DNA of 64,000 bases from Cyanophora paradoxa CCMP329 (GCA_004431415.1 QPMI01000176.1:1-64000), one strand, 5' to 3'; counted from the first letter of the stretch, positions 5,086 through 55,525 are shown. Notes: generated by a model from the sequence alone, not told the origin. Program-made: numbers and translations.

Positions 5086-5731
5086 ACAGCCGTGCCGGAC
5101 CTCCAATCAGCCATGATTCCTGCTAGCAGCTAGCTTAAATTCTCGTGCGACTTCACTCCATTTAGCTTATTTATGTGCATGTGGTTGACATGAGTTAACC
5201 GGTTTGCTTTTTTCCTTAACTTATCGCATATGCATCCTCCTGCCGCCAGTGCCGCAGTGCGGCCAGCTGGCTTGTAGCCGTAGCTCGACAGTGCACTTTT
5301 AGCTGGGTTATAGATAGCCGACCTGCATGCGCAATCAGCAATCAACGAATTCGAAAGCCGTACTCGCTGCATGTTATCGTCGTACCGCGCGATCGCTCGA
5401 ATACATTAATATGTTTCATGCCAACAATACACGATATTAATAAGCGCAGACCACAGGCGTGATGCTAGCTAGACCACAGAGTTCTTCGAAGAGGAGAGGA
5501 GGGGGAGTTGGGAGGAGATCTAGAGGGAGCAATATCACTCGGAGCATCCCAGCCGCAAAGCTGGCGCCTACCAAAGGGACGGAAGACATGCGCAGGAGCC
5601 ACCAGGGTTCTTCGGCACTTCCAGCAGGGGGGTGCGCCTGAGGGGCGGGGGTATGAAGGGCTTCGGATCGTTTCTGCGGCGGGGCGCGGTCAGGGGCTGG
5701 GGGCGGGCGCGGCGCCCGAGCTGTAGCTTAC

Positions 5732-6884
5732 TCACTGAGAAGGCGCCTTGTCCTGCGTCTTGCGGTACCTTTCGGCGTACCACCCGCCGAGCAGCGTGAG
5801 CGGCCCCCTGCGCGGCGCCCCGGCCCCGGTCAACAGAGGGCCCCGGGCGGCTCTCAGGCAGCGCTGCGGGGTGCCTGGCGAAGAGGTTGTAGAAGAACGA
5901 CGTATCCCGGCTCTTCATGGCCTTCTTGAGCGGGTCGTCGCCCTTGCCTGGGGCGGGGGCGCGCCGTCGGCCGGCGCTCGGGCGCGGGAGCGGCCGGGCC
6001 TGCCCGGGGGGTACGGGGGCGCACTGAGCCACTGGTCGCGGTGGAGGACGATCCACTGGCCGGTCCCGTCCAGCTCGAGGGTCGTCAACACCTTCACCGC
6101 GAAGGGCTCCTGTCGATTTGGGGGAGGTACGCGTCACGGGGGCGCGCGAGGGCTGGCGGCCTGTGCCTGCCTGCTTGCCGGGCCTGTAGTAATCCTGGTC
6201 GTTCTCGCACACGATCACCGTCGCCTGGGGCCTGAGGAGGCAGCATCAGCAGCGAGGCGAGTGGCTCGGAAGCACGCCGCGACGCATCGGGGGCAGGGAT
6301 TAGCGCTGAAGACGCAAAGCGCAGCTAGCCCCCAGACCGCCAGTCCGCCAATCGCTTAGATGGAGTCCCGGAAAAAAAGTTTGGGCTGGCACTGCGCTTG
6401 CTACGAGACGGGGCTCGGAGTGTTCAGCAGCAAACGCACTTCTGAAGCTGAATGGTGTAGGCCTTCGTTTCCCTGAACTCGACGCGCGTGAAGAACTTCA
6501 ACAGCAGCGTGAACGCTGAGCGCCGGCCGTCAGTTCGCTCGGCGGGCGCGACGCGAGGTTCGAAGGCGAGGCAGGCGGCACGCGGATCCCGGAAAGCCGC
6601 CGCAGGATGCAGGAGGCTCACCGTTCTCAATTTCCCTGTAACCCTTGCATCTGCCCGCGCCCAAGTGGTGAGTGCACGTGCTGCTCGCCTAAAAGGCGCA
6701 GGGGCGCGCGCGCGGGGCATGGGCGAGGTGCGCACGTCGATAGCGGGTCGATGAACTTGCCCTGGTCGCTGAAAATGCTGCGGATGGGGCTGATGTCCGG
6801 CTTCCCGCCCTCGGGATAGATGTACATGCGTTTAACTGTTTCAAGCAGCTGCCGGTGGTGCGCACTCAGAGGCTGCTGTGCCAT
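5732..6884 (-). CDS. Small NTF2/SnoaL-like fold protein (spliced)
   Basis: Exons MAQQPLSAHHRQLLETVKRMYIYPEGGKPDISPIRSIFSDQGKFIDPLST, AFTLLLKFFTRVEFRETKAYTIQLQK, VIVCENDQDYYR, VKVLTTLELDGTGQWIVLHRDQW and ..RKTQDKAPSQ*. The F.DP..., LELD..G..I..HRD.W pattern is typical of SnoaL-like domains. Confidence 0.55.
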
Positions 6885-7153
6885 TGCTTTCCGCACTTCT
6901 TCGTGTGTGTGGGGGGGCGTTGTATCGCTGTACCCCGTTTCGACCGACGTGATGGCGCCGTCTGCAACCCGGCCGTGGTGACCTGATCATGAGGACCTCG
7001 GAGAGCTAGCTCGCGTGACACGCGCCCAGCCGAGTCATGGGGCCAGATAGGAGCCTGAGATAGCCTAGTCGGTTGTATGGAGCTCAGTCTACGGTTTTGC
7101 CCCGCGTGCGTTAGCGTTAGCGTTATCGCCTCTACCTGACCTGAACTGAGCAT

Positions 7154-7543
7154 ATGCGTCTTTGCGCGCGCTTAGATCGGTCGTGCGGCGTGCAGTGCGT
7201 GTTCGGCGGCAGCAAAATGCATATGATGCGCAGGCTCATCGCTCGGGCCCTTGGATCCGGAGCTCAGGAGCGGGTCCGGGGGCAGCTGCCGAGGCGGAGG
7301 CACTGCCAGGCGCCGGCGACGCGTCGACGTCTGGAAGCGCCAGCAGCAACGTTCGCGGCGTAATCTCTATGTGCGCCCCTCGCATGCGTGTGCCCCGCAA
7401 GTTGCTTGAGTAACTTTAGTTCCGGGATATCAATCTGCTTTCTAGATCTGCGCATGCCACTGACGATGCGCGTTCTGCACGTGCACCTCGGATCCTTGTC
7501 GACGTCATTTGCTCTCAGTCTTGACATAAGCGGTGCGCCCCCT

Positions 7544-7574
<31 letters not shown>

Positions 7575-10500
7575 CCGTGCTGTCCCCGGAGGCTAGCGCT
7601 GCTCGTGATTGCCGTTAACGTTCTCCGTGCCCTGACTCCGACCACGCGGACCCCTGCTGCCTACAGGCTTCACCGGTGCATGCGCACTCGCCCAGCCTGA
7701 ATTAAAGACGGTAGCTAAAGATGACGCCGGGCGGGCGCTGCGCGCGCGCAGGGCTGTGCGAGAAGGCGGCGACGAACGATCGGCTGATCGAAGAGCTGTG
7801 CAAGATCATCAACGGCGCCTTCAGGCTAGTACCACCGCGTACCCCTGCTGAACCCTTCGCGTACCCCCTGCTGCGCCCATCGCATTGCTGCTGATCGAGC
7901 GCCCCGCACCGGTACCCCAGCAAGGAGATCGAGGTCGTCGAGAAGCACGGGGGGGAGGTCCTCTGCTTCCTGGTACCCCCTCCCCCATCACACCCCGGCC
8001 TGCTGTACATGTCACATCCCGCGCTGATCCGCGTCCGCAGGGCGACGGTGACTCTATATATGGCCGCGCCGAGGCAGTGATGCGCCAGCGCCCGCGCGGC
8101 TGATCATGAGCGCCTCCGCTTCAGGCCTGCTCGTTTTCTGGCCGGACCTGGCGCCCCCCGGGAGCGACGCGCCGGCCTCCGAAGGGGCCGAGGGGAAGGG
8201 CCGGGGGGCGCCGGCGCTCGGATCCCCGCCGACCAGCAGCAGGGCCGTGCCGCCGGGCCCCCGGTGCGCGCCTTCCGAGCCCGGAGGCTTTGAGCGTGGC
8301 CGGGGCCCCTCGCTGACCGGCGGCGCGGGCCCCGCGCCCCCGCCCCGCATGCGCAGGCCGGGCAGCCCCGAGGCGCCGGGCGAGGCGGGGGCCGCGCGGA
8401 TGGCGGCGCGCGTCGCGGCGGCCGTCCTCTGCGCCCTCGAGATCCAGGAGGCGGGCGCCGCGGCCCGGCCCCCGCTCCCGCCGCCTCGCCGGCCCCTCAG
8501 GCGGCGCCCCGCGCGCGCAGGTCTTCTCGGAGGCGTGCGTCGGGATGGGCTCCGACATGCGCCTCCGCGTTGCCGTCGCCGGTGCGGCGAGCGGGGGCGC
8601 GGCCGCGGCCGGGGCGCCCCGGGGCGATGACGCGCGCGGGGCCGCAGCGGGCGAGTTCGCGGAGTACTTCTGCGGCATCGGGGGCGCGACGAGCGGCGGG
8701 GGTGGGGCCGGGGCCGGGGCGGGGCCGGCGGCCCCCGCCGAGAGCGCCCTCGTCTACAACGCCGGCCGGCCCGTCCCGGGGTGCGGCCCCGACGCAGCGC
8801 GCCGCGCGCCGCCCGACGCGGGCCGGCGCCGCCTGCGGGGCAGGCGCATGGTCCACTTCATCGCGGGGCCGGCCATCGCGGAGGCCGGCGGTGCGCCCCC
8901 TCTCCGAGGCTCCCGCTCGGCGGCCCCGCGCGGCGGCCCACTGCGGCGCCGGCGTCGCGCAGAGGCGCTGGCGGCGGTGAAGGCGGGGAGGTGGCGGTCT
9001 GCGGGTCGGCGCGGCGGCACCTCCCGCCCTCCCTGCTCGGCCCGCCGCCGGCGTCGCTCGCGCCCGCCAGCCGAGCATCTCCCCCGCGCCGGGCGCGCCC
9101 AGCACCCCTTCGCGCAGGGGAAGCGCTAGCGCTGGACTCTCGGTGCCGGGGGCCGTGCCGGAGCGCGAGGGGTGGGGCAGCCCCGCCGCCCCCGAGGGGC
9201 CCGCCGCCGCCCTCCTCAGCGCCCCCGTCGCCCAGGTCTGCGCATGAAGCCCCGTATCCCCCACCCCTGTTCCCCCGCGCCCTGTGCCGCGTGTCGGCTT
9301 TCATGTAACGCGCATGCCCCCCACCACCGCACCGCACCGCCGCACCGCAGCCGCTGTCGCGGGTGGTCGGCCTCGTCGCTGATGCGCCGCGGTGCGTCCC
9401 CCTCCCGCCTCCCTTCCCGCCCGCATCTGAGCCGGCGGGGCGCCCCGGCAGGCCCGGCGGGGAAGCGGCGGGGGGGCACGCGGTGGCGCCCCCCTCCGCC
9501 CGCCCCCTCCTCGAGCGCTGGGCCCGCCGCCTCCCCCAGCCGCCACGCGTGCGCCGGCAGCCTTGCGCGCGCCCTGCGCCCTCGCGCTGAATCCGAAGCG
9601 GCGCATGGGTGCCGGCAGGGCCTCCGGACCCGGCCGAGCTGGGCCCCGACGGGCAGGACGCCGTGGCTCTCTACGTGTACGCCCCGCGCCCCTTCCTGCG
9701 CCGCCCTCCGCCGTGGCGCGCGGCGGCCCCCGAGCGACCCCCGCGCCGGCGGCCCTGCGGATCTGCGCAGGCCGTACACGGTTCGGGCGCGCTTCGAGGA
9801 CATGCGCGAGTGGGCCGCGCTCTCCGGAGTGCGAGACTTCGACCCGTGCGGAATCCACCTACCCCCCTCCCCTCCCCCGGCGGAATCTCACGTATCCCCA
9901 GAACGCGGTTCCTGAGTGAGTTCCGCGTCGTCTCTGTCCTGGTACCCGGCTTTTCGCACCCCCCCCCCCGGCCCCCCCTCTTCGAGGTCTCTCTTCCGAG
10001 CCAGGGTACAGTTCATGAAGCTTGAGGGGCTGGATCCGTCCCACGCCAGCGTTCAGCGGACCGTCAGTACCCTGCAGGCCCGCCCCCGGTCCCTCGATCC
10101 ATCCGTGCCCCGCGGGCCTGATCGGAGCGAGGTGTACCCCAGGCGACGCTGTACAGCTACGAGGGCTCCCTGCGCCAGATCGTCTTCGATGGCGCGTAAC
10201 CCCGCGGCCATCCCCGCATCCCGCACCCCCCAACACCCCATCCCTCACCCCCTCTTCTCGCTTATCTCCTCCGCCCCGCCCCCCCGGTCGGCGGCTCGTC
10301 TCTCACGAGCCCGGGGCCGCGGCTCGCAGACAAGGGGGTGGTCTTCATCGCCGTCTTCGGCCTCTGGCCCTTCGGTGCGCCCTTCGGGACGCGGCGCTCT
10401 CCCTCCCCTCCTGCACTCCGACCCTCCCCTGACACCCGCCGGCGGCGCAGCGCACGAGGACGACCCGGCGCGGGCCGTCGCCTGCGGTGCCCCCGGCCGG

Positions 10501-37992: not shown

Positions 37993-39412
37993 TCAAGGGC
38001 GTCCGACGGTCGACACAGAAGTACTAGTCACACTAGAACGACGAGGAGCACGGGGACGCAGCAAATAAGGAGAACGAGCACGAGGAACTACAGTCGAAGA
38101 CGAAGATCTAGACGAAGACGACAAGACAGAGCTAACAGCAGAACTAGAAGACGTAGTCGCAGGAGGCAAAGGCGGTAGAACAGTAGGAGAAGCGAAACGG
38201 AGGACACCACTAGAGGGGAAAGTCGAAGCTGGCGGAGTGTCTAAACGGAATCGAGATTGTAGAGTTGGTAAAACAATGGACGGCTGAAGACTAATCTGAG
38301 GAACTGGGGACGACACGAGGAAAGGGGCAGAGCTCGGGTGCAGACTCGGAATCGGCAGTATAAGAGGAGGGGCGAAACGCAAGCCAGTAGTGACAGGGAA
38401 AGCAGACGATGGGGCTGAACCAGGCGGGAGAGGCAAATATAGCGAAGTAGAAGAGAGAGAAGGGTACACACGAGGAACGTCACCATACACAAAATACTCG
38501 CTGCCAAAAACTATACGGTCTGACGGTCGCTGAAGATAAAGAGGCGGAACTGCCTGAGGGCTAACAGTGAGAGATGGAGGAGGAAGAGGCAGAGCTAACG
38601 ACAAAGGGAACGGAATCAAAGGTACAGGGAAGGCATGGAATACACGAGGAACTGGAAGGTGGAGGGGGCCAGTGCTCCTAACTAACATCGATGAAGCATC
38701 TGATGGAGGTGACGGCAAAACAACTGAGGGTAAACTAAGTTGAGGTGAAGCGAAGATTGATACAAGACTATCATGAATCAAAGGGGGCCATGCAGGAACC
38801 GGCGGGCAAGGTGGATCTGGCGGGACAGCCAGAGGGGAAGCCGAAGGTACAGGAGAGGAAAGCCGCAGGCGCCGAGACACATGGACAAGGGACGGATCGG
38901 CATCGGGAGGCAAGGTTGAATTCGACGGAGACCGGGGGCGGCGGATTCGTGAAACGGAAGGTATCAGAGAAGGACTAGGGGGGGGCAGGGAAGTACGGAG
39001 CCGCTGAGCAGGTGGCGACGGTGAGGGTGCAGGGGAGCGAATCCGTCGCAAAGTCGGAACAGGCTGACGGGGCTCGGCATATGTAGCCGCAGCTGCAGGA
39101 GCTGGAGCAAGCACTGGGGGTGCCGGATCCGGAGACTGGAGGCGGGGGCGCTGGGCAGGAGGCACAGGATCTGGAGGATTCTCTGAACTAGAGGGGGTTC
39201 GAGGTCGGCGAACGCCACGGGCGTTAGCAGGATGTTTATCAGCCCGAACATGACGGTCACGATCAGCAGAAGACTGAAAGTTCTTCCCACAAATAGGGCA
39301 TATTAATGTGGAGGCAGAAGCGGCGCTAGCGCTAGCATCGGCAGACGAGCTCAAACGAGAACTCGAGGGAGCCGGGACCGAAGCTGTATCAGCGCTAGCA
39401 GATGGCCTCGCA
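37993..39412 (-). pseudogene. LINE ORF2, displaced C-terminal part with C2H2 zinc finger and Pro/Ser-rich tail
   Basis: Zinc finger CPICGKNFQSSADRDRHVRADKH. The frame joins ..VNPQVQHIA|RPSASADT.. when 39413-51060 is removed. The ORF lacks its own ATG. Confidence 0.8.
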
Positions 39413-39429
39413 CACTGGGAGACACGAGT

Positions 39430-39533
39430 TGTTGTTACCCCGGGGTAAACTTGAACATGTTACCCCGGGGCAAAAGAATGCCGTTTGTATTGCCCCGGGG
39501 CAACAAGTTCAAGTTTACCCCGGGGTAACAACA
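39430..39533. repeat. Subterminal nested palindrome: four TT(A/G)CCCCGGGG(T/C)AA motifs forming a ~100-bp inverted repeat
   Basis: GTTGTTACCCCGGGGTAAACTTGAAC...GTTCAAGTTTACCCCGGGGTAACAAC. Related motifs occur at 50684-50712 and 50966-51036. Confidence 0.9.
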
Positions 39534-39779
39534 TCGTCAGCCAATCAGATTCGTTTGCTCCAGGGCTCTGACTGGTTGTTTTTTTCCCTTTTTTTCCCAA
39601 AATGCGATTGATGTTTTTTTGGGATCTGTCAATCGTGTTCTTCTTATTGAAAAACAAGCCAATCACAGAGCTAGCTAGCCACATACAACTAGCTAACTAG
39701 CCATTCCGCTAGCCATTGTAGCCAAGTACATAGCTAGCTATAGCTAGTAGCTAGTAGCTACTAGCTACTATAGCTAGTA

Positions 39780-40700
39780 GGGGCGCGAGCACCTGTTTCC
39801 GGGCCGATGATGCTTTTGCACGCCCTGCTGGAGACGCCAAAAGCGATGGTCAGCCCCAGAGCAAGGAGCGGAAAGCGGAACCTAACATCTACAGGCCCAG
39901 CCGGCAGCCCCGCTCGCTCGCTCACCTCCGAGCAGCGGGGCCGCCAGCAGACCCCACCACTCGGTCAACTCCGAGCGGCAGGGCCAGCCGAAGTGCGCTA
40001 TCGAAAAGGAGGGGCGCGAGCACCTGTTTCCGGGCCGATGATGCTTTTGCACGCCCTGCTGGAGACGCCAAAAGCGATGGTCAGCCCCAGAGCAAGGAGC
40101 GGAAAGCGGAACCTAACACCTTCAGGCCCAGCCGGCAGCCCCGCTCGCTCGCTCACCTCCGAGCAGCGGGGCCGCCAGCAGACCCCACCACTCGGTCAAC
40201 TCCGAGCGGCAGGGCCAGCCGAAGTGCGCTATCGAAAAGGAGGGGCGCGAGCACCTGTTTCCGGGCCGATGATGCTTTTGCACGCCCTGCTGGAGACGCC
40301 AAAAGCGATGGTCAGCCCCAGAGCAAGGAGCGGAAAGCGGAACCTAACACCTTCAGGCCCAGCCGGCAGCCCCGCTCGCTCGCTCACCTCCGAGCAGCGG
40401 GGCCGCCAGCAGACCCCACCACTCGGTCAACTCCGAGCGGCAGGGCCAGCCGAAGTGCGCTATCGAAAAGGAGGGGCGCGAGCACCTGTTTCCGGGCCGA
40501 TGATGCTTATGCACGCCCTGCTGGAGACGCCAAAAGCGATGGTCAGCCCCAGAGCAAGGAGCGGAAAGCGGAACCTAACATCTACAGGCCCAGCCGGCAG
40601 CCCCGCTCGCTCGCTCACCTCCGAGCACCGGGGCCGCCAGCAGACCCCACCACTCGGTCAACTCCGAGCGGCAGGGCCAGCCGAAGTGCGCTTCCAAAAA
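39780..40700. repeat. Tandem repeat, 231-bp unit x4
   Basis: Unit GGGGCGCGAGCACCTGTTTCC... starts at 39780, 40011, 40242 and 40473; copies are near-identical. Confidence 0.95.
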
Positions 40701-41673
40701 GAAGAGGACTAGTACTGCGAACCTTGACGGCGCAAAGAATCCCTTGACGGCGCGCGAGCATTTCTGCCGCAAGAAGTAAGCAGACGAAAGAAGCAAAACC
40801 AACAGCAAGAGCGGCCGCGGAAGGGCTGGGCTAGGCACGCGCGCGGCCCCTCGCGCGCGCGTTCTGGGCGCGTGCAGCCCCGCAAGGGCTGGGGACGAAT
40901 CCAAGCAAGTTCAAAGATCTGCATGATTTGCATTAGCAAGCTGATGCAGAGCAGCAGACTATCGTGCGACGCGCGCGGCACAACGACCATCGGCAACGTT
41001 AACGCCATCGTCGCACGATAGTTGGCCGCTCGTCGCAACAGTCGGCTCAAAGGCAGTCGTAGATGCGCTGGCGCGTTGAACGCGTGGCGCTGCGCTGAGC
41101 GGCCAGTGCACTGAGAGAAAATTTGAAGTTGTAGGAGAGGAGCCGCAGGCACCACGCCAGCGGAATGCCCACGCACCTCCAGAAAGATCTTGGAACCGAG
41201 GCGTCGCCCCAGAGCGGCCGGTGACTCGCTCTAACATCCCAATGCCGCGGAGCGTGTATCCCTCGGGTCCTCCTCCCCCCCTCCGGCCGAAGCCACGCGT
41301 CGAGCCACTACCAGCTTCGGCATCGAATACCCATGATCTACGGTAGCACAGCTCCGGCCTTGCGCCGCAACAGTCGCTGCAAGGTTCGGGTGCGCCGTCG
41401 GGGCTCTAGCTGCGCGGGCTCTAACGGGCTTCTAACATGCTTCGAACAGGATTGCAAGATGCTGGAAGTGTTAGTGAATGGTCTACGTCCTCGCCTGCGC
41501 ACGATGATGACGCCGCCGCAGCAGCTGCAGACGCTCCAAGCTTCCATCCGACTAGCTGCAGAGGAAGCGCTGCGCAGCTGACGATGGGAGATTGCAGCGC
41601 CGTTCCGAAAGATAGCTGGATTGGTCACGGGCCGCGCTTCCGCTCAGGCAAAGTTCGACGTACGGCCCGTACG

Positions 41674-42840
41674 CCGCGCCCTCGCGGCGGGGGCGGCCGG
41701 GGCGCAGCGGCGGCCCTTCGCTCGCTTGGTCCGCGCTCCTCCGCCCTTCAGCGCCGCGCCTCGCGCGACGGGGCGGGCGCAGGGAGCCCGACTCGCGGCG
41801 CCCTCGCGGCGGGGGCGGCCGGGGCGCAGCGGCGGCCCTTCGCTCGCTTGGTCCGCGCTCCCCCGCCCTTCAGCGCCGCGCCTCGCGCGACGGGGCAGGC
41901 GCAGGGAGCCCGACTCGCGGCGCCCTCGCGGCGGGGGCGGCCGGGGCGCAGTGGTGGCCCTTCGCCTGCTTGGTCCGCGCTCCCCCGCCCTTCAGCGCCG
42001 CGCCTCGCGCGACGGGGCGGGCGCAGGGAGCCCGACTCGCGGCGCCCTCGCGGCGGGGGCGGCCGGGGCGCAGTGGTGGCCCTTCGCCTGCTTGGTCCGC
42101 GCTCCCCCGCCCTTCAGCGCCGCGCCTCGCGCGACGGGGCGGGCGCAGGGAGCCCGACTCGCGGCGCCCTCGCGGCGGGGCGGCCGGGGCGCAGCGGCGG
42201 CCCTTCGTTCGCTTGGTCCGCGCTCCCCCGCCCTTCAGCGCCGCGCCTCGCGCGACGGGGCGGGCGCAGGGAGCCCGACTCGCGGCGCCCTCGCGGCGGG
42301 GGCGGCCGGGGCGCAGCGGCGGCCCTTCGTTCGCTTGGTCCGCGCTCCCCCGCCCTTCAGCGCCGCGCCTCGCGCGACGGGGCGGGCGCAGGGAGCCCGA
42401 CTCGCGGCGCCCTTGCGGCAGGGGCGGCCGGGGCGCAGCGGCGGCCCTTCGCTCGCTTGGTCCGCGCTCCCCCGCCCTTCAGCGCCGCGCCTCGCGCGAC
42501 GGGGCGGGCGCAGAGAGCCCGACTCGCAGCGCCCTCGCGGCGGGGGCGGCCGGGGCGCAGCGGCGGCCCTTCGCCCGCTTGGTCCGCGCTCCCCCGCCCT
42601 TCAGCGCCGCGCCTCGCGCGACGGGGCGGGCGCAGGGAGCCCGACTCGCGGCGCCCTCGCGGCGGGGGCGGCCGGGGCGCAGCGGCGGCCCTTCGCTCGC
42701 TTGGTCCGCGCTCCCCCGCCCTTCAGCGCCGCGCCTCGCGCGACGGGGCAGGCGCAGGGAGCCCGACTCGCGGCGCCCTCGCGGCGGGGGCGGCCGGGGC
42801 GCAGCGGCGGCCCTTCGCCCGCTTGTTCCGCGCCTCCCCG
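41674..42840. repeat. GC-rich tandem repeat, 122-bp unit x ~9.5
   Basis: CCCT(C/T)GCGGC.. at 41679, 41801, 41923, 42045, 42167, 42288, 42410, 42532, 42654 and 42776. Confidence 0.95.
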
Positions 42841-42867
42841 CCCCTCGGCCCGGCGGCACCGCGCATT

Positions 42868-44160
42868 GAATTGTAGCCCCAGCTGGGAAGTACCCGCAAA
42901 GATATGGCTCCTTTTCCAGCAAGCTTGGCTACAACCAGTGTGGGAAACAATGCCGAGCTCTGCCTAGGGCTTTGCAGTCACGATTCTGGGCATATAAAAA
43001 GCTAAGTTAGGTACACAGGACCCCTGCGGCCTTGAGAGCCAGGCCTGAGCTGCTGTAGGGCGGATTTTGGCGTGATCGCGATTGCTCGTGAGCAGCCTTG
43101 CTGGAGCACCTCCAGCAACGTTTCTGGAATCGGTGGCGCTGCATGCTCAGCGAACATGCACAAAAGCTCAAGGCTATTCTCAAAGTCGTAAATCTGTGAA
43201 CACATATGATATAAGGCCTTGTTTTGCTCCTTTCCGTGTGACTGAAGGCACCACGTCACTCATTCAGTAACTCAGGGTATCAACCTGACAGGAGCTTTGA
43301 GCCACTGGAACCGAACTTGACCTGCATCAAGCGAAATGATAAGGGAATGCAAGAGCTGAATTGCAGCCCCAGCTGGGAAGTACCCGCAAAGATATGGCTC
43401 CTTTTCCAGCAAGCTTGGCTACAACCAGTGTGGGAAACAATGCCGAGCTCTGCCTAGGGCTTTGCAGTCACGATTCTGGGCATATAAAAAGCTAAGTTAG
43501 ATACACAGGACCCCTGCGGCCTTGAGAGCCAGGCCTGAGCTGCTGTAGGGCGGATTTTGGCGTGATCGTGATTGCTCGTAAGCAGCCTTGCTCGAGCTCC
43601 TCCAGCAACGTTTCTGGAATCGGTGGCGCTGCATGCTCAGCGAACATGCACAAAAGCTCAAGGCAATTCTCAAAGGCGTAAATCTGTGAACACATATGAT
43701 ATAAGGCCTTGTTTTGCTCCTTTCCGTGTGACTGAAGGCACCACGTCACTCATTCAGTAACTCAGGCCTAGGGTATCAACCTGACAGGAGCTTTGAGCCA
43801 CTGGAACCGAACTTGACCTGCATCAAGCGAAATGATAAGGGAATGCAAGAGCTGAATTGCAGCCCCAGCTGGAAAGTACCCGCAAAGATATGGCTCCTTT
43901 TCCAGCAAGCTTGGCTACAACCAGTGTGGGAAACAATGCCGAGCTCTGCCTAGGGCTTTGCAGTCATGATTCTGGGCATATAAAAAGCTAAGTTAGGTAC
44001 ACAGGACCCCTGCGGCCTTGAGAGCCAGGCCTGAGCTGCTGTAGGGCGGATTTTGGCGTGATCGCGATTGCTCGTAAGCAGCCTTGCTGGAGCTCCTCCA
44101 AAAACGTTTCTGGACTCGGTGGCGCTGCATGCTCAGCAAACATGCACACAAACTCAAGGT
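42868..44160. repeat. Tandem array A, 490-bp unit x ~2.6
   Basis: GAATTG(T/C)AGCCCCAGCTGG at 42868, 43358 and 43854 (spacing 490 and 496). Confidence 0.95.
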
Positions 44161-45780
44161 GATACTCTAAGAGGTAAATTTGGAATCCCGGTTTCATAAT
44201 CAGTTCTCCATGGCCACATCCAGCCTGCCAGAGAGATCTAAAGCAATATTAATATCTTTGCAGCTGCAGGTTGGCCCCAGCTAGCTATAGGGCTGCCGTT
44301 CAGCTCTTGCATTCCCTAGTCATCCCTCTTGATGGCGGACAAGTTAGGTTCCAGTACTAGTGGCCCAACGCTCTTGCAATCAATTGCCAGGCAGACAGCT
44401 GTTTCCGCTGGTTCCAAGAGGGGGGGGGTGGACTGACGGTGGGGTACGAGAAAATAGGCTATACTTCAGGCCATCCAGCTTGCATATGAGCAGCGCTCCA
44501 ACTGGCCAGAAGTGCTTAGCTATCAGCGAGATGCAATCTCACTGCCTGGAGCGCCCAGGAGCGCCCTTTTTCGGGGCAGCACGCAGCTGCAGCGACCGCA
44601 ATTCCGCCATGGCGGAGCTGCTTCATCGCGATCTTCGTGCTCCAGACGGGACGTAGCTAAGCAGGAGCGGTCCGCTCGAGGCTGTCTGTGGTCGGCCAGA
44701 AGGTACTTCCGCGCCTTGCTCTCCGTGGCGCCTCACGACATCATCTCACGGCTCTGCTCGCAGGGGCTCGCACAAGCCTCTCAGATGTTCTCGGCTGGTC
44801 GCGGTTGCGCCGCCGCGACGCGCCGGCCACTCGTGTCGCCGGGCGGGTGCAGGTGCAGTCGGGCCTCAGCGGCATGTCTTGTGTCACCTGCGCTTCGCCA
44901 GTTGTGATGTGTGCGGTCGCAGGACACGATGCGCTCTCGTGGTTCGGGTCACAGCCCCCCAGGAGTCGCCGCGGTGCGGGCGGGACCTTTTGCCTCCTTT
45001 GCTGAGCTCGGTTCTGATGCGTGTGCATGCAGGCATTGCGTGTGCATTGTGTTGCGCTTCGGATCGCGCGTTTCAGACCGAGAACGCCACCGCGTCCCCC
45101 TTCTGGGCCAGCTCTTGGTCCTCTCCGTCGCTCTCCGTGTCTCCCTTGGATAGTGAGTCATCGAGATAGTCATGTATGATAAATCCACGCGTTTTCCCGT
45201 CGCCCCCGCCTCAGTGGTGGGTGCCACTGCTGTGCCACTCTCGCAGAGGCGCCCTGCAGCTGCCCGCCCAGCACGCCCCGCGGCACTGGAGATGAATAAA
45301 GCCGATGTGAATTACATTGAAGCACATCAGAGCACAGTCCAATGTGTCCGCTGAGCGCGGGCAAGGGATCCAAGCCTGATCCCAAGGCCTTGCCACCACC
45401 ACCGCCAGCGACCGAACGCAGCAGGGCACCCTGCACAGCGTGCAAGCAGTGCGCAACAGAGTTAGCCTTGCGTAAGAGCGCAGCTGGCGCGGGCGTTCTG
45501 CCGGGATGCGCACCGGGAGCGACCAGCACCAGGGGCGCAGCGGCCACCAAGCCAGTCCACGCGGCGGAACCTCCCAGTGCGTCCCGCGTAAGCTGTTGAT
45601 ATAAGCAATGTGCGCGTGGGCTGCAAGCGTCGGGCGAGGTCGCGGTTGGTCGCTGGCTGCCGAGCGGGCAAGTGCAGTGGACGGACCCTCATCATCGTGC
45701 GCAGGCGAGGACGTAGACCATTCACGAACACTTCCAGCATCTTGCAATCCTGTTCGAAGCATGTTAGACCCGTGCAGCTA
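44160..45780. repeat. ~1.6-kb block directly duplicated at ~48900-50522; its first part (44277-44735) also occurs inverted at ~46034-46503
   Basis: Near-identical sequence, and paired ORFs in the track (44360/49094; 44512/49246/45978 on minus; 45342/50085). Confidence 0.92.
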
Positions 45781-46627
45781 CAGCGCCCGGGTCGCCACAC
45801 CTTCCAGAGCACGCGAAGATAAATCCCTAAACGGGCCGCCCTGCTGTATCGACACATATGATGACTAAACGGCCCGTTTGTATCTTCGGATACGCCAGCT
45901 GGTCCGCTGGCGGGCTCCTACAGCATTGTATCTTCATCAGCCGCGTGATGCAGTCGGGAGGTACGACCATACAGAGCTCAAAGCAAAGCAGCTGCTACGC
46001 AAGCTCCTGCGCAACAAGGCCCTAAGATGATGGCGTGAGGCGCCACGGAGAGCAAGGCGCGGCGGTACCTTCTGGCCGACCACAGACAGCCTCGAGCGGA
46101 CCGCTCCTGCTTAGCTACGTCCCGTCTGGAGCACGAAGATCGCGATGAAGCAGCTCCGCCATGGCGGAATTGCGGTCGCTGCAGCTGCGTGCTGCCCCGA
46201 AAAAGGGCGCTCCTGGGCGCTCCAGGCAGTGAGATTGCATCTCGCTGATAGCTAAGCACTTCTGACCAGTTGGAGGCTTGGAGCGCTGCTCACATGCAAG
46301 CTGGATGGCCTGAAGTATAGCCTATTTTCTCGTACCCCACCGTCAGTCCACCCCCCCCCTCTTGGAAACAACGGAAACAGCTGTCTGCCTGGCAATTGAT
46401 TGCAAGAGCGTTGGGCCACTAGTACTGGAACCTAACTTGTCCGCCATCAAGAGGGATGACTAGGGAATGCAAGAGCTGAACGGCAGCCCTATAGCTAGCT
46501 GGGAAGAAGAAGAAGAGTATGTATATATAAGACACGTCCAAGCTTAAGCCAGCCGTACGGTTTTGACAAAAGGCGAAGAACCCAAGGGCCCAAGGCACAA
46601 TTGAAAGTGAACCAGCTAGAAAAGGGT

Positions 46628-48900
46628 AGCTGGGAAGTACCCGCAAAGATATGGCTCCTTTTCCGAAGTTCCGATCGCGATCGAGCAAGCTTGGCTACAA
46701 CCAGTGTGGGAAACAATGCCGAGCTCTGCCTAGGGCTTTGCAGTCATGATTCTGGGCATATAAAAAGCTAAGTTAGGTACACAGGACCCCTGCGGCCTTG
46801 AGAGCCAGGCCTGAGCTGCTGTAGGGCGGATTTTGGCGTGATCGCGATTGCTCGTGAGCAGCCTTGCTGGAGCTCCTCCAGCAACGTTTCTGGAATCGGT
46901 GGTGCTGCATGCTCAGCGAACATGCACAAAAGCTCAAGGCAATTCTCAAAGGCGTAAATCTGTGAACACATATGATATAAGGCCTTGTTTTGCTCCTTTC
47001 CGTGTGACTGAAGGCACCACGTCACTCATTCAGTAACTCAGGGTATCAACCTGACAGGAGCTTTGAGCCACTGGAACCGAACTTGACCTGCATCAAGCGA
47101 AATGATAAGGGAATGCAAGAGCTGAATTGCAGCCCCAGCTGGGAAGTACCCGCAAAGATATGGCTCCTTTTCCAGCAAGCTTGGCTACAACCAGTGTGGG
47201 AAACAATGCCGAGCTCTGCCTAGGGCTTTGCAGTCATGATTCTGGGCATATAAAAAGCTAAGTTAGGTACACAGGACCCCTGCGGCCTTGAGAGCCAGGC
47301 CTGAGCTGCTGTAGGGCGGATTTTGGCGTGATCGCGATTGCTCGTGAGCAGCCTTGCTGGAGCTCCTCCAGCAACGTTTCTGGACTCGGTGGCGCTGCAT
47401 GCTCAGCGAACATGCACAAAAGCTCAAGGCAATTCTCAAAGGCGTAAATCTGTGAACACATATGATATAAGGCCTTGTTTTGCTCCTTTCCGTGTGACTG
47501 AAGGCATGCGCACCACGTCACTCATTCAGTAACTCAGGGTATCAACCTGACAGGAGCTTTGAGCCACTGGAACCGAACTTGACCTGCATCAAGCGAAATG
47601 ATAAGGGAATGCAAGAGCTGAATTGCAGCCCCAGCTGGGAAGTACCCGCAAAGATATGGCTCCTTTTCCAGCAAGCTTGGCTACAACCAGTGTGGGAAAC
47701 AATGCCGAGCTCTGCCTAGGGCTTTGCAATCATGATTCTGGGCATATAAAAAGCTAAGTTAGATACACAGGACCCCTGCGGCCTTGAGAGCCAGGCCTGA
47801 GCTGCTGTAGGGCGGATTTTGGCGTGATCGTGATTGCTCGTGAGCAGCCTTGCTGGAGCTCCTCCAGCAACGTTTCTGGACTCGGTGGCGCTGCATGCTC
47901 AGCTAACATGCACAAAAGCTCAAGGCAATTCTCAAAGGCGTAAATCTGTGAACACATATGATATAAGGCCTTGTTTTGCTCCTTTCCGTGTGACTGAAGG
48001 CACCACGTCACTCATTCAGTAACTCAGGGTATCAACCTGACAGGAGCTTTGAGCCACTGGAACCGAACTTGACCTGCATCAAGCGAAATGATAAGGGAAT
48101 GCAAGAGCTGAATTGCAGCCCCAGCTGGGAAGTACCCGCAAAGATATGGCTCCTTTTCCAGCAAGCTTGGCTACAATCAGTGTGGGAAACAATGCCGCGC
48201 TCTGCCTAGGGCTTTGCAGTCATGATTCTGGGCATATAAAAAGCTAAGTTAGGTACACAGGACCCCTGCGGCCTTGAGAGCCAGGCCTGAGCTGCTGTAG
48301 GGCGGATTTTGGCGTGATCGTGATTGCTCGTGAGCAGCCTTGCTGGAGCTCCTCCAGCAACGTTTCTGGAATCGGTGGCGCTGCATGCTCAGCGAACATG
48401 CACAAAAGCTCAAGGCAATTCTCAAAGGCGTAAATCTGTGAACACATATGATATAAGGCCTTGTTTTGCTCCTTTCCGTGTGACTGAAGGCACCACGTCA
48501 CTCATTCAGTAACTCAGGGTATCAACCTGACAGGAGCTTTGAGCCACTGGAACCGAACTTGACCTGCATCAAGCGAAATGATAAGGGAATGCAAGAGCTG
48601 AATTGCAGCCCCAGCTGGGAAGTACCCGCAAAGATATGGCTCCTTTTCCAGCAAGCTTGGCCACAACCAGTGTGGGAAACAATGCCGAGCTCTGCCTAGG
48701 GCTTTGCAGTCACGATTCTGGGCATATAAAAAGCTAAGTTAGGTACACAGGACCCCTGCGGCCTTGAGAGCCAGGCCTGAGCTGCTGTAGGGCGGATTTT
48801 GGCGTGATCGCGATTGCTCGTAAGCAGCCTTGCTGGAGCTCCTCCAGCAACGTTTCTGGACTCGGTGGCGCTGCATGCTCAGCAAACATGCACACAAACT
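46628..48900. repeat. Tandem array B, same 490-bp unit x ~4.6
   Basis: Homologous ORF ends at 46768, 47258, 47754, 48244 and 48734 (spacing 490/496/490/490). Confidence 0.95.
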
Positions 48901-51057
48901 CAAGGTGATACTCTAAGAGGTAAATTTGGAATCCCGGTTTCATAATCAGTTCTCCATGGCCACATCCAGCCTGCCAGAGAGATCTTAAGCAATATCTTTG
49001 CAGCTGCAGGTTGGCCCCAGCTAGCTATAGGGCTGCCGTTCAGCTCTTGCATTCCCTAGTCATCCCTCTTGATGGCGGACAAGTTAGGTTCCAGTGGCCC
49101 AACGCTCTTGCAATCAATTGCCAGGCAGACAGTTGTTTCCACTGGTTCCAAGAGGGGGGGGGTGGACTGACGGTGGGGTACGAGAAGATAGGCTATACTT
49201 CAGGCCATCCAGCTTGCATATGAGCAGCGCTCCAACTGGCCAGAAGTGCTTAGCTATCAGCGAGATGCAATCTCACTGCCTGGAGCGCCCAGGAGCGCCC
49301 TTTTTCGGGGCAGCACGCAGCTGCAGCGACCGCAATTCCGCCATGGCGGAGCTGCTTCATCGCGATCTTCGTGCTCCAGACGGGACGTAGCTAAGCAGGA
49401 GCGGTCCGCTCGAGGCTGTCTGTGGTCGGCCAGAAGGTACTTCCGCGCCTTGCTCTCCGTGGCGCCTCACGACATCATCTCACGGCTCTGCTCGCAGGGG
49501 CTCGCACAAGCCTCTCAGATGTTCTCGGCTGGTCGCGCGGTTGCGCCGCCGCGACGCGCCGGCCACTCGTGTCGCCGGGCGGGTGCAGGTGCAGTTGGGC
49601 CTCAACGGCATGTCTTGTGTCACCTGCGCTTCGCCAGTTGTGATGTGTGCGGTCGCAGGACGCGATGCGCTCTCGTGGTTCGGGTCACAGCCCCCCAGGA
49701 GTCGCCGCGGTGCGGGCGGGACCTTTTGCCTCCTTTGCTGAGCTCGGTTCTGATGCCGTGTGCATGCAGGCATTGCGTGTGCATTGTGTTGCGCTTCGGA
49801 TCGCGCGTTTCAGACCGAGAACGCCACCGCGTCCCCCTTCTGGGCCAGCTCTTGGTCCTCTCCGTCGCTCTCCGTGTCTCCCTTGGATAGTGAGTCATCG
49901 AGATAGTCATGTATGATAAATCCACGCGTTTTCCCGTCGCCTCCGCCTCAGTGGTGGGTGCCACTGCTGTGCCACTCTCGCAGATCTAGAGGCGCCCTGC
50001 AGCTGCCCGCCCAGCACGCCCCGCGGCACTGGAGATGAATAAAGCCGATGTGAATTACATTGAAGCACATCAGAGCACAGTCCAATGTGTCCGCTGAGCG
50101 CGGGCAAGGGATCCAAGCCTGATCCCAAGGCCTTGCCACCACCACCGCCAGCGACCGAACGCAGCAGGGCACCCTGCACAGCGTGCAAGCAGTGCGCAAC
50201 AGAGTTAGCCTTGCGTAAGAGCGCAGCTGGCGCGGGCGTTCTGCCGGGATGCGCACCGGGAGCGACCAGCACCAGGGGCGCAGCGGCCACCAAGCCAGTC
50301 CACGCGGCGGAACCTCCCAGTGCGTCCCGCGTAAGCTGTTGATATAAGCAATGTGCGCGTGGGCTGCAAGCGTCGGGCGAGGTCACGGTTGGTCGCTGGC
50401 TGCCGAGCGGGCAAGTGCAGTGGACGGACCCTCATCATCGTGCGCAGGCGAGGACGTAGACCATTCACGAACACTTCCAACATCTTGCAATCCTGTTCGA
50501 AGCATGTTAGACCCGTGCAGCTAGAGCCCGGACGGCGCACCCGAGCCTTGGAGCGACGTCAGCGATCGGCCGGCCAGCGACTCCCAGCGCATTTCCTGCA
50601 CATCTATGTGCATCACACAGCTAGATAGGCTTGAGCCACTTAGCCGGCCTGGCCCGGCGACGTCGCTGCGCTCGCCCCCGCAAAGGGGTAAACTCGAAGT
50701 CGTTACCCCGCGGGCCGGGAGCAGCGACCGTCGCTAGCTTATGTGAGCTTTTGTGTCGTAATGATCTATAGTGAGGTTTGGGCGTCTCTCCGCAGCCCGC
50801 GCGCAGCCCGGGAGCCGCGCGCGTTCAGCTGCAGGGGCGCTCGAAGCAACACAGCGGGATCTCGCCTGGGACGCAAGCAGGCCATCGGCTCGTAACGGAT
50901 TCTATCTAGATATGCAAAACATAGCATATGTACGCGCTTGCAGCGCTCCACGGCGAGGTTGTCTTAGAGGGGGTAACAACAAGGGGGTAAAATCGGCCCA
51001 AAAGGAGTAAACTCGAAGTCGTTACCCCGGGGTAACGACACTTCGTGGCTACCAGTG

Positions 51058-54000
51058 GCAATGTGCTGAACTTGAGGATTCACGCCGACGCCATTAACTG
51101 TAGCAGCAGGCCTAGGGGTAGCGACTGCAGGGGGGCCCGGGACCGCGACTGCTGGGGGGCCCGAGCGCTGTAGAGGGATAGCTCCGCGCACAGAAAAGAA
51201 GCTCGCATCAAAAATAGATTGAGGGGGGCTAGGGCGGTCACGTGACTCAGGGTTTGAACCATCGTAATCAGAGCCCTCCCCTAAATGCCGTAAACGAAGA
51301 AGCTCAATGCGCTCGACAGCAGGAGGCAACGTAATCTCGAGAATATCCAGAAAACGTTTCCACAGGTTTAGCAGAGCATTAACGGAGTACACTGGTACCC
51401 GCTCAGCAAGTAAATTATCGGGTGAGAGATATGCACGGGACAGCTGAAAAATTGCGTAAATGCCCGCCAAAATATAACCGAGATACCGAACACAGAAATC
51501 GGCATCCTCAGAAGATGTGATCAATGTCCCCGCAACACCGGGAACTTGTGGATCTAGAATAGCGGAGAACGTAATAGGAGGCAATGGTAAAGAGGGCTGC
51601 ACGTCCTCGGGCAAAGCCTCTGCTAAGGATGTGAGCTCAGCATGCATGGCCCGCCAAAAACCCTGCACCACAGGGCAATCAAAGAAAACGTGCCGCACTG
51701 AACGATGCTGCCCATCATTACAAGCGCGGCAGAAAATAGCCGCGACCGGCGGCCGTTGTAAAGATGGGAAAGCCTTATATCGGAGACGGAAGAGGACATC
51801 GAGCCACAGCATAGGAAAGGCACGAAGGGCGACGAGCTGAGACACGCGATTAAGAGGGAGGTCCAGACCCCAGTGTTCTGAAGGCATCTTAGCCCTACTC
51901 CGCACCCGCCACAGTCGCTGTACCTCGAGCTGGTAAAAGCGCCGAACAGAAAAGCCCTGAAGCGTGAGCATCTTATCGAATGTGAAAGCAAAATTGCTGT
52001 AGGAAAGCGTAGCTGTCGAACCCGTGCCAAGCGAAACCAGAATTGGACGCGAACCTCTGCGCAAAGAAATAAAATACTGGAGGAGAGCACATGAAGCGGC
52101 AAGAGGCCAGCTGGTACGCCAGGGTACAAGAGCGGATCTGGAGGGCGGCCACGGGGCCACGGGACGAAATCCAACACCCGTGGGACAATCTCACCTTCAA
52201 AAAGAGGGAAGGCCACAAAAAAGCCCGAGGGACCCCTCAGATACACATATTTATCATCTTTCGATTTATACCATAAGAAACGTTCCGGTACGGCATTAGC
52301 AGTAAGCGTTGTAAGCCAACTGGATGGCAGGGCACGACAAATTTGATCAAAGGCAGCAGTATAATCAACTAGCATTGCAGGGGAGCACGAAATCGGTGCA
52401 ACTGTACATCCCAAATGTCAGCGACGCGCTGTACACCGGCTCTCGCAAACTCAGTATGTGTCTGTGCTGCAATGTCACTAGGAAGAACATATAAAGGATT
52501 AAGAAAAATAGGCTGGGTCAAAATTTGATGCACGGTTGTAGGAGATGCAACGGCTTGACGATCTCGCCACGCCTCAAACAGCATCTGCCAAAGCGGTGGC
52601 AAATGCAATCTTGGCAAGATGGCAGACACATCAAGCCCAAAATGACATTAGCATAAGAGAATGGAGCCAACTGACGGTCTATTTGGTATTGAATATATTC
52701 CTTCCAAGGAGCTGAACAGGCCGGGTCGTTAAGGAAGGCAAGCCATTTAGATTTTAAAGCCAGCGAAAACGTAACAATATCTGGGCAATTTAATCCACCG
52801 TCTTTAAACGGAAGCGCCGTAACATATGTAGATACAGAGCCGCGTACACCCGAAAAGTTGCGGATTAAATTACTCCAAGCTTTATAACGATCACCTCCCG
52901 GTTCTAAAATATACAGCGGATAATGTAGTGATCCCACAATAGCAGCCCACGCAAGTAAAACACCAGAGCGTAGAGGCATCCGATTCCGGTTAACTGACTG
53001 TGCGCGCAGAACGAGAGCAGCAGTCTTTTTATTCCAAAACCGGTCATGCACTAGCTCCAGAGGGAACCCGAGATATTTGGCGATCTTGGCATCTGCGGAA
53101 ATCTCAGAAGGATCAACCTTCATACGCTCAAAAGGACAATCAGGTGGAAGAGATAAATTTGAGTGCATGGGTAGTATATGCGATTTTTCGAGATTAATTT
53201 TCGCCCCTGTTAACCGTTGAAATTTCTTAATGAGAGCGTCCCAAATGGGGAATTCCGCAAAGGAGGCAATAAGGGGAACAGTATCATCAGCAAACTGGAG
53301 GACCTTGCATATGGACCGCCCAGAAATTTGCACCCCGCGTATACGGGGTTCAGTATCGATTAACATGATTAATAGATGCGCACACAAATTATATAGATAT
53401 GGCGATAGAGGACCACCCTGCCGGACTCCGCACCGGATGGGAAACCGAGGCGTTGTCCAGCCATTAATATGGATCATCCCCGACAGATCAGAATACAAAA
53501 GACGGACCCAGTCAGTAAAGTAGGACCCAAATCCATATTGATTCAAGGTCCAGAAAAGAAACTCCCAATTCACCCGATCATAGGCTTTGGAGAAATCAAG
53601 GAACCCCAAACAAAGTTCCTCGAGATCGGGATTATCCCCCTCATAATACATCAATAAATATACGAGCATAAATTGATGCACCGCAGAACGTTTGGTGATA
53701 AAACCCGACTGATATTTTGATATTAAGCGGGGCATGATAGGGGTCAAGCGGTTAGATAATGCCCGCTCGACTGCTCGCTCCTCTACATTCGATAGAGCGA
53801 TAGGCCGACGGTTAGTGACCAAAGTCGCATCCGTACCAGGTTTCGGAATTGGGACAATGAGGATATCTCGTAGCGAGCCAGGGGCCGCCTTCCGATTATG
53901 CATAGCCTTAAGGTATTCCATAAAATCTGGACCAATGTCGCCCCAGAAAGTACTATAAAATTCAGGTACTAAACCATCAAGTCCAGGGGATTTTCTAAGC

Positions 54001-55525
54001 CCAGATATATCCTTAAACGATTGCAACAATTCATAGGCGGCCAGTGGGGTATCAAGATCCACGGCCTCCCGCGGAATGAGTTTATAAGGCGCATACAGTG
54101 ACGCACATTCAGCCCGTTCATCACGATGCGCCGCCACCACACTTTGAGCTTGCTGACCATCGTATAAATCAGCGAAATGAGCTGCCGACAACGTCATAAG
54201 CACAAAGGGATTATCAGAAGCATAAGAGGGATCCGGGGTGTTGGCCGGCCGGAGTTTATTCTCACATCCGGTCTCCTGCTCAGCAGTTCCGAAATAATGA
54301 GTGAAAAACTCCCGCCTCGATGTGGCCTCGTTCTGACTTGAGAATAGCGAGTCAGCTTGAACGGCAGCCCTACACACTTGAGGCATGCGCTCCCGCAGCT
54401 CTCTATAAAGAGCAGAGCGGCCACTCAAGAAACTGTCCCGTAAGATCTCGCCCTGCGAATAGGCGGTGATGAGACGTTCGAGACGTTTCATAGCAGACCA
54501 GTAAGCCGACTTATTCTTGCGCCGCTCAGTCGACTCCCACGCAGAGAGAGCAGTCTGTAGATACCGTTTAAGAGCTTCGAAGCGAAGAATAGAATCGGAT
54601 GCAGGCGAAGGCCACTCAGCACGCCACATCTGAAAAACCTTCCGAATTTCAGCGAGATACGCTGGGTTCTTCCCATAAAGGTCCCATCGCATCTTCCAGC
54701 GACCCGGCCCACGCTGATGAACTGGAGGGGACAGCGTGAGTTGAACTCCAATGTGATCAGAAAGAGGCCTATCAAGATGTCTGGAAGTGTATTTCATCCA
54801 TGGGACGAGCACTGGGTTCCATGCGAGTAGGGATTGAGAGACAAAGAAATAATCTAGACGAGATTCGACGGCCCCCGAGGCTGCCTGGGCATTAGTCCGA
54901 TAAAACGTTTTAAATCGATTAGACCGGCGCTCATCCGTACAAAGCGATGCAACATCCTGGAGTTGATATTGCGAGCAAACCGCTTCAAAGGATGCAGGGG
55001 GCAAAACCCGCCCCGAAGTACTGTTCGCGTCAGAAGGCAAAAGGTGAAAGTTAAAATCACCACATAAGATTAAATGGGACCCCACAGGAACGACCGACTC
55101 CAGAGTATGACACAATGTCTCGTAGAAGCCTAACCGTTCAGCATCCTGAACAGGTGCGTAAATGTTGCACAGGTAAATATTTACAGTTCCAGAGCGCAAC
55201 AGGAACAGCTGCAGCCGGGAACTCTGTGCAGGAGCTAGCGAGGTAATGCTAAATCGCTTATTAGGGAAGAGAGTAGCTACACCTTGACTGGCAACTTCTG
55301 GATTGAAAGCCCAGTACGAAGGGTAGCCCCCCACTTGCCTTTCAGAAAAGCAGCGTCTACTTTACTCGATACGTGAGTTTCCTGTAAACAAACTATGGAT
55401 TTGCGAGACTGTTCACGAGCACACTTAAGGAGATAATCAACGTGGTGCATACCAAGTGAAGCACAGAAGCTTGTGTCTCCTACTAATTTCCCTGCAACGT
55501 TCAGGGAGACAATATTGATGGCCAT
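51058..55525 (-). pseudogene. LINE ORF2, N-terminal part: AP endonuclease + reverse transcriptase + zf-RVT; several frameshifts
   Basis: APE motifs SLNVAG, CLQETH, NIYAP, CGDFN, SRLDYFF and SDH. RT motifs KSPGLDG, RPIALSN, QSGF, LDFSKAYDRVNW, GVRQGGPLSPYLY and QFADD. zf-RVT is CRAC..SVRHVFFDCPVVQGFW. Frame breaks occur near 55330, 52620, 52400 and 52160. Confidence 0.92.

Follow-up and report, generated by a model that had tools for sequence, protein, structure and literature searches.

In a stretch of 64,000 nucleotides from Cyanophora paradoxa CCMP329 (GCA_004431415.1 QPMI01000176.1:1-64000; the window in the following, with positions counted from its first letter), near-identical copies of repeats differ from one another by insertions of 6 bp which all obey one rule: where one copy has a trinucleotide X, the other has X-rc(X)-X, rc(X) being the reverse complement of X. 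The five differences of this kind lie inside an element of 11.6 kb with CACTG...CAGTG termini, and they are probably donor-site scars of cut-and-paste elements that end in C...G and make target-site duplications (TSDs) of 3 bp, the flanks having been sealed as hairpins and then joined in register. The differences are genuine and chance is excluded as their source; excision scars as such are known, and a form as uniform as this one is without precedent in the literature searched. The features on which the argument is built are collected in Table 1.

Table 1. Positions in the window of the repeats, scars and other features discussed
Feature	Position	Strand	Remarks
CACTG...CAGTG element, apparently non-autonomous	39413..51057	+	11,645 bp; encloses all of the repeats and scars of the five sites
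Copy A of the 2.9-kb duplicate	42867..45784	+
Copy B of the 2.9-kb duplicate	47619..50527	+	98% identical to copy A
Copy C, inverted, 0.5 kb	45999..46503	-	probable donor of a gene conversion to copy A (44353-44453)
Scar 1, AGG-CCT-AGG	43764..43772		in 490-bp unit 43408-43903; AGG in the other five full units
Scar 2, AAT-ATT-AAT	44245..44253		AAT at the paralogous site 48991
Scar 3, AGT-ACT-AGT	44353..44361		AGT at the paralogous site 49093
Counterpart of scar 3 in copy C	46418..46426		ACT-AGT-ACT on the + strand
Scar 4, GCA-TGC-GCA	47504..47512		in 490-bp unit 47174-47669; GCA in the other five
Scar 5, AGA-TCT-AGA	49982..49990		AGA at the paralogous site 45245
Complex 19-bp insertion	46666-46684 (feature 46661..46684)		other 490-bp units have TTCC with AGC directly after
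hAT-type scar, GTTGGAG-G-C-TTGGAGC	46269..46284		in copy C only
Long interspersed nuclear element (LINE) open reading frame, RVT_1 + Exo_endo_phos	52518-55334	-	downstream of the CACTG element; in DNA of 46-52% GC

Insertions between young repeat copies

In the region from 42.9 to 50.5 kb, a 490-bp satellite forms two arrays; a direct pair of 2.9-kb duplicates (copies A and B) and an inverted copy of 0.5 kb (copy C) are also present. The copies were compared by pairwise and global alignment (2.9-kb pair) and by multiple alignment (490-bp units), and all five 6-bp differences to which an earlier reading of the bare sequence (the sequence-only reading) had drawn attention are borne out at their positions. 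Copies A and B are separated by 32 mismatches and 6 indels in their global alignment over 2.9 kb; four of these indels are 6-bp scars (43764, 44245, 44353 and 49982), the remaining two concern one CG dinucleotide and one C. Among the six full 490-bp units, the only indels are AGG-CCT-AGG and GCA-TGC-GCA. As in an excision footprint, the un-inserted state is seen in paralogous copies and two direct copies of X flank rc(X). The 231-bp and 122-bp arrays that the CACTG element also carries hold no X-rc(X)-X event and one 1-bp indel only.

About 11 indel events can be counted between young copies: five scars of +6, one of +8, one complex insertion of +19, and four changes of 1–2 bp. Chance as the source of the 6-bp class is excluded, because five out of five 6-bp indels fit a rule which a random 6-mer meets with odds of about 1/4096, or 1/700 if rotation of the alignment is allowed for. 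The sequence-only reading had made itself dependent on an enrichment of +6 X-rc(X)-X over other indels; between the young copies such events are about half of the indels, and the motif is in excess across the window (see below). The scars had further been described as strikingly frequent in relation to substitutions. The 2.9-kb pair has 4 scars for its 32 substitutions, and the 490-bp units have 2 for about 20 substitutions private to single units. This amounts to about one scar per 8–10 point substitutions, which in itself is ordinary; the unusual point is that a single type makes up about half of the indels. That the insertions preserve reading frame, as had also been remarked, is irrelevant in satellite DNA with no open reading frame that has a Pfam domain.

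The same reading had mentioned a longer insert with CGA-TCG-CGA-TCG at about 46666–46684, and this insert is real and 19 bp long. It contains CGA-TCG-CGA/TCG (46672) and, in addition, TTC-C-GAA-G-TTC (46661), a scar of a second, 8-bp grammar in which rc(X) is set off from the two copies of X by the spacers C and G; if both grammars are taken out, a 5-bp GATCG core is left that can be derived from neither.

A scar of a different kind, the +8 event of the above count, is found in copy C, where an 8-bp duplication with its two central bases complemented occupies 46269–46284; copies A and B are without the duplication and read GTTGGAGC, one 8-mer, at 44496 and 49230. The pattern is that of Ac/Ds-type scars, which have been attributed to flank hairpins (PMC5873905). 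Across the window, scars of the hAT type number 7 where about 3.6 are expected, that is, without clear enrichment, and the one at 46269 alone comes with a before/after pair. Because this verified scar lies within the same 6 kb, hairpin-type donor scars appear to be retained in this genome; the presence of a classical hAT-type scar in the inverted copy would also imply that an element with an 8-bp TSD was once active inside the CACTG element.

Direction and spread of the insertions

Outgroup copies exist for sites 1, 3 and 4 and not for sites 2 and 5. At sites 1 and 4 the insertion is the derived state, the other 490-bp units being without it. Site 3 is likewise derived: a diverged inverted homologue within the 490-bp unit, which aligns without gaps through the site 3 region of copy B, has a single ACT, and the un-inserted state is therefore the ancestral one.

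Scar 3 is present in copies A and C. When all three copies are aligned, 14 substitutions prove private to C, every one of them outside 44353–44453, and none is private to A; B differs from both others by 3 substitutions and the indel, all of them inside that interval. Because the differences private to B all fall inside and those private to C all fall outside, the alignment points to gene conversion from inverted copy C into A over a tract of about 100 bp (44353–44453 and 46318–46418, in inverted repeat copies 1.9 kb apart), so that scar 3 would have arisen once and then spread. Of the earlier claim of five independent events, it holds that all five are real; they are not all independent between the two 2.9-kb copies, the scar at site 3 being common to copies A and C, probably through gene conversion.

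Excess of the motif across the window

Beyond the pairs of copies, the window holds 269 9-mers of the form X-rc(X)-X, where local dinucleotide shuffles give 102 ± 12. If only those X are counted that contain A or T, there are 145 motifs as compared with 15.4 ± 3.8 under an order-3 Markov null model built per GC class; in all 145, as in all five events, rc(X) directly adjoins X, which is how palindromic (P) nucleotides are placed. Roughly 30% of the A/T-containing 6-mer palindromes belong to the motif, and about 3% would be expected to. Among the unit lengths of two to four that were tested in motifs of the form Y-rc(Y)-Y, only three is enriched (138 found, 14.6 expected); neither units of two (131 and 108) nor units of four (2 and 1.8) are. 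Three motifs with a 5-nt unit also occur (18917, 39731 and 63247; 0.3 expected), which could represent several 3-nt scars on top of one another or else the trace of an element with a 5-bp TSD.

The second grammar is equally specific with regard to its spacers. When the 16 forms X-a-rc(X)-b-X with A/T-containing X are counted, 17 motifs fall to the pair (C,G) and at most 3 to any other pair, including the pairs (G,C), (C,C) and (G,G) of the same composition. TGC-C-GCA-G-TGC accounts for 5 of the 17, in unrelated flanks (5250, 18856, 37597, 56277 and 60899); its triplet is of the class of GCA, the TSD of the resident element, and this may hint at a target preference of the process that leaves C...G scars, although this is suggestive only, as the window offers a single TSD.

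Motif density declines with GC content, from 4.8/kb at 55–65% GC to 3.2/kb at 65–75% and 1.0/kb above 75%, and the LINE open reading frame (Table 1), with its endonuclease and reverse transcriptase, has no scar at all. The usage of X follows the background frequency of trinucleotides, and neither a flank consensus nor a target consensus was found at the motifs. One-mismatch versions of the motif are also in excess in DNA of intermediate GC content (233 as against 166 ± 13), and hence older, decayed scars exist as well. A hot spot with eleven A/T-containing motifs in 530 bp is located at 7217–7748, a segment of 64% GC that is bordered on each side by a block above 80% GC; two of its motifs, at 7441 and 7449, are directly adjacent.

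The resident CACTG element

The element that encloses the five sites is bordered on both sides by the TSD GCA (39410–39412 and 51058–51060), 3 bp in length as in CACTA/CMC elements. Its terminal inverted repeats, CACTGGGAGACACGAG... on the left and ...TTCGTGGCTACCAGTG on the right, conform to the CACT(A/G) termini of that group and are complementary at 16 of the 20 terminal bases; subterminal repeats of the type TTACCCCGGGGTAA, in either orientation, recur over roughly the outermost 130 bp on the left and 380 bp on the right. No Pfam hit above threshold, and with it no CMC-type DDE transposase, was found in the open reading frames of at least 150 amino acids inside the element, which is why it is called non-autonomous. 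It would thus be a non-autonomous carrier of satellites, the assignment to CACTA/CMC being taken from ends and TSD only; its cargo comprises the 231-, 122- and 490-bp satellites and the 2.9-kb segmental duplication. A search of the window for further CACTG-type ends returned only the two termini of this element. The suggestion that the element itself, by virtue of its TSD, could have left GCA-TGC-GCA at 47504 fails because the element is still in place; at most, the target triplet is shared.

Several further observations concern the element and its surroundings. Just inside its left end (39660–39780) lies a CTAG-rich stretch of low complexity with overlapping TAG-CTA-TAG and CTA-TAG-CTA, which resembles stacked scars. 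Less than 100 bp outside both ends (39325–39399 and 51108–51116), the scars GCT-AGC-GCT-AGC, AGC-GCT-AGC and AGG-CCT-AGG are found, an arrangement that fits repeated use of one neighbourhood. Other genomic copies of the element differ in structure around 46505–46546, since in short-read contigs from X14 and X20 a run of 10 differing letters leads from 46546 back to 46505, and there are loose ends at 46521–46546.

Origin of the scars

Three things favour excision as the source of the insertions: the 3-nt unit matches in length the TSD of the resident CACTG element; C and G, which act as spacers in the 8-bp variant, are the terminal bases of CACTG...CAGTG, such that 17 motifs in the window hold the bases of an element end; and a hAT-type scar verified by its un-inserted counterparts is located in the same 6 kb. 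The likeliest source would be the CACTG...CAGTG (CACTA/CMC-like) family, because a member of 11.6 kb encloses the region. The broad choice of X, which tracks the background, fits a CACTA origin too, as the 3-bp targets of CACTA elements are variable (PMC4423477, Table 1). From such comparisons we infer the past presence of an element at the sites, the hairpin intermediate and the family responsible. The sequence-only reading had offered excision footprints and a distinctive hairpin or template-switch repair pathway as alternatives; excision is favoured here and itself includes hairpin repair, its transposon origin being presumptive.

The scars could have been formed as follows. An element would insert and duplicate the triplet X, giving a donor site L-X-[C...G]-X-R, where L and R are the flanks. 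Excision would then seal each flank as a hairpin, the left strand reading L-X-rc(X)-rc(L) and the right one, in the sense of the top strand, rc(X)-X-R. If host nucleases opened these hairpins a few bases off the tip, the palindromic overhangs of both sides would be rc(X), since the same X stands on both flanks, and could pair in register; the two overhangs being two readings of rc(X), many opening positions would lead to the single product L-X-rc(X)-X-R. With the first nick placed one base inside the element, the tip would keep a C for each flank strand and the product would be L-X-C-rc(X)-G-X-R; a first nick displaced by one base towards the flank would, by the same logic, yield the hAT-type scar at 46269. 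We know of no biochemical demonstration that CACTA/CMC transposases cleave with flank hairpins.

Three other schemes were considered and rejected. Abortive integration, with target hairpins arising from reversed strand transfer, would turn X round at its site (L-rc(X)-R) and leave the length unchanged. A staggered nuclease cut followed by fill-in predicts X-X (+3), which is absent among the copy differences and not enriched in the window (1051 as against 931 ± 46). Opening of hairpins at variable positions without register predicts +4 (X-c(x3)-X, with c for the complement) and +5 (X-c(x3)c(x1)-X), neither of which is enriched.

Excision by elements with 3-bp TSDs also has several points to answer. 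The shorter products that variable opening of hairpins should give (+3, +4 and +5) are not enriched across the window, so that the resolution must be unusually deterministic; published CACTA scars are short and heterogeneous, and the uniformity seen here, which is without documented precedent, likewise requires a resolution step that is nearly deterministic. No locus was seen in the window at which one copy has the element and another the scar. As there is one CACTG element with one TSD in the window, a comparison of TSDs with X is anecdotal, and as all runs look like one strain, there is no population polymorphism to draw on. Finally, the scar without spacers outnumbers the C...G scar by about 9:1 and holds no element-derived base, for which reason another family or process could make it.

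The first possibility of this sort is that both kinds of scar stem from excision, the spacer-less 6-bp class being the work of a different family with 3-bp TSDs and CACTG elements leaving only the C...G class. There are indeed two distinct grammars, in a ratio of 9:1 in the window, and a single family would need two positions of the first nick to produce both. We nevertheless regard a division of labour between two families as rather improbable: the two grammars share the 3-nt unit and are nested within one insertion (46661–46684), and the window shows no further element whose TSD is 3 bp long, a generic scan there for terminal inverted repeats with 3-bp TSDs having been swamped by GC-rich chance matches.

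The second possibility is that no transposon was involved, and that fold-back (snap-back or template-switch synthesis, for instance by a theta-type polymerase) caps or primes breaks which are spontaneous or due to nucleases, their repair adding an inverted and a direct copy of the neighbouring triplet. The missing element base in the common scar, the lack of a filled site, the absence of sequence preference in X and of a consensus in the flanks, and a uniformity unlike that of published CACTA scars would all be compatible with such a process. Yet fold-back synthesis is expected to yield variable lengths, whereas the 3-nt unit alone is enriched; this fixed length fits a target duplication of 3 bp and is, moreover, the TSD length of an element family that is present on the spot. 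Nor would repair that is blind to sequence predict the C and G of the 8-bp variant. A transposon-independent origin is therefore considered distinctly unlikely, and excision of elements with 3-bp TSDs is preferred over it.

Read support

Short reads bear on the question of whether the scars are genuine. Logan short-read contigs from four runs (three of 2024 and one of 2012) were compared with positions 44030–50029, a stretch outside of which site 43764 lies; all runs look like one strain, and they may include the sample behind the assembly. Gap-free contigs cross scar 2 (44245) in X1, X7 and X14, and scar 3 (44353) is covered by such contigs in all four runs (44276–44579); both empty sites at 48991 and 45245 are crossed by gap-free contigs in X20. 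The comparison revealed no 6-bp indel relative to the window. The bins over 47504, 46283 and 46418 are without a contig, and no contig is shown to bridge 49982. When 31-mers were sampled from 3800–9799, where unique sequence carries over 25 motifs, 96% were present in 19 runs of 2024, and 21–67% in three runs of 2012. Absence from independent Illumina reads, which had been named as the outcome that would undo the finding, is thus contradicted for scars 2 and 3, which are carried by short-read contigs, while 43764, 47504 and 49982 are sites without a bridging contig. At two positions (45686 and 49756), the contigs are short by one base each, which reflects either errors of the long-read assembly or differences between paralogues.

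That the scars arose in assembly or polishing of the long reads is hardly conceivable: the two 1-bp differences suggest that the assembly is not free of error, and no listed contig bridges sites 1, 4 and 5, but two scars and two empty sites stand in gap-free contigs from runs of 2012 and 2024, nearly all 31-mers of the scar-rich unique stretch recur in the 19 runs, and a polishing error would not obey a reverse-complement rule set by the local triplet.

Comparison with known systems

Flank hairpins are established for hAT, MULE and Transib/RAG (PMC5499845), and for Ac/Ds the hairpins, the P nucleotides and the microhomology-guided joining are all documented (PMC5873905). The scars described here resemble those of Ac/Ds in that inverted flank bases are centred on the position adjacent to the element and both TSD copies are kept, the joining after opening of the hairpins being guided by microhomology in that system (PMC5873905). 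They differ from them in the unit, 3 bp instead of the 8-bp TSD of hAT elements, and in the outcome: hAT scars are heterogeneous, with 28 types in 128 events (PMC5873905), whereas there is essentially one product here, or two if the C...G form is included.

With CACTA/En-Spm/Tpn1 elements, the scars have in common the 3-bp TSD with its variable target, the CACT(A/G) termini (PMC4423477) and the location around a duplicated triplet. Scars of plant elements of this group are, however, short and variable: those of Tpn12, a member of the Tpn1 family, measure 3–5 bp (10.64898/2026.08.24.746626), multiple scar variants of a Pack-CACTA element occur in one plant (PMC6379663), and perfect footprints of rice CACTA elements are rare (PMC4423477). 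In Cyanophora, by contrast, the gain is fixed at +6 or +8 and includes the full inverted triplet, and the density rises up to 3–5 scars/kb of non-coding DNA.

The coding joints of V(D)J recombination (RAG/Transib) are similar in that palindromic additions result from off-centre opening of a sealed flank hairpin (PMC5499845); there, no TSD exists and the ends are unrelated, hence no in-register pairing of P overhangs takes place and the products are diverse. For mPing (PIF/Harbinger), repair is reported to be uniform because the target duplicated on either side of the element provides the homology (PMC4561436); mPing repair restores the original site precisely, while in the scars discussed here the homology would be between the inverted copies and 6 bp are gained.

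No report on X-rc(X)-X scars was found in the literature searched. The paper on the Cyanophora genome (about 100 Mb, 67.6% GC, PacBio assembly with Illumina correction; PMC6704402) does not mention them, nor does it use "palindrom" or "footprint" with such a meaning; PMC12312487 and PMC12810828 have nothing on footprints.

Significance

The young repeat copies are of value because they go beyond a mere excess of motifs: they provide true before/after pairs, with polarity and with a rate. Within 6 kb, the region brings together three types of scar, accompanied by controls for unit length and spacers and by partial read support.

We would put forward, as a tentative proposition of limited likelihood, that excision of one family adds the full inverted 3-bp target in a nearly deterministic manner, and that its scars are a major, countable source of non-coding DNA and palindromes and a genome-wide record of flank-hairpin cleavage by CACTA/CMC elements. 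Less likely is that the common scar is made without a transposon, by an undescribed form of break repair with a fixed 3-nt fold-back.

If the insertions are excision scars, a family with 3-bp TSDs inserts and leaves so often in this genome that its scars accrue at about one tenth of the rate of point substitutions and make up about half of the small indels in young repeats. They would then represent a measurable share of the non-coding DNA, perfect motifs alone amounting to about 2% of the DNA of intermediate GC content in the window. They would also be behind most of the A/T-containing 6-bp palindromes, so that transposition would shape base composition and, possibly, the stock of palindromes to which proteins bind. 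In addition, the form of the scars, including the C...G variant, would constrain both the chemistry of cleavage by CACTA/CMC transposases and the way in which the host opens hairpins.

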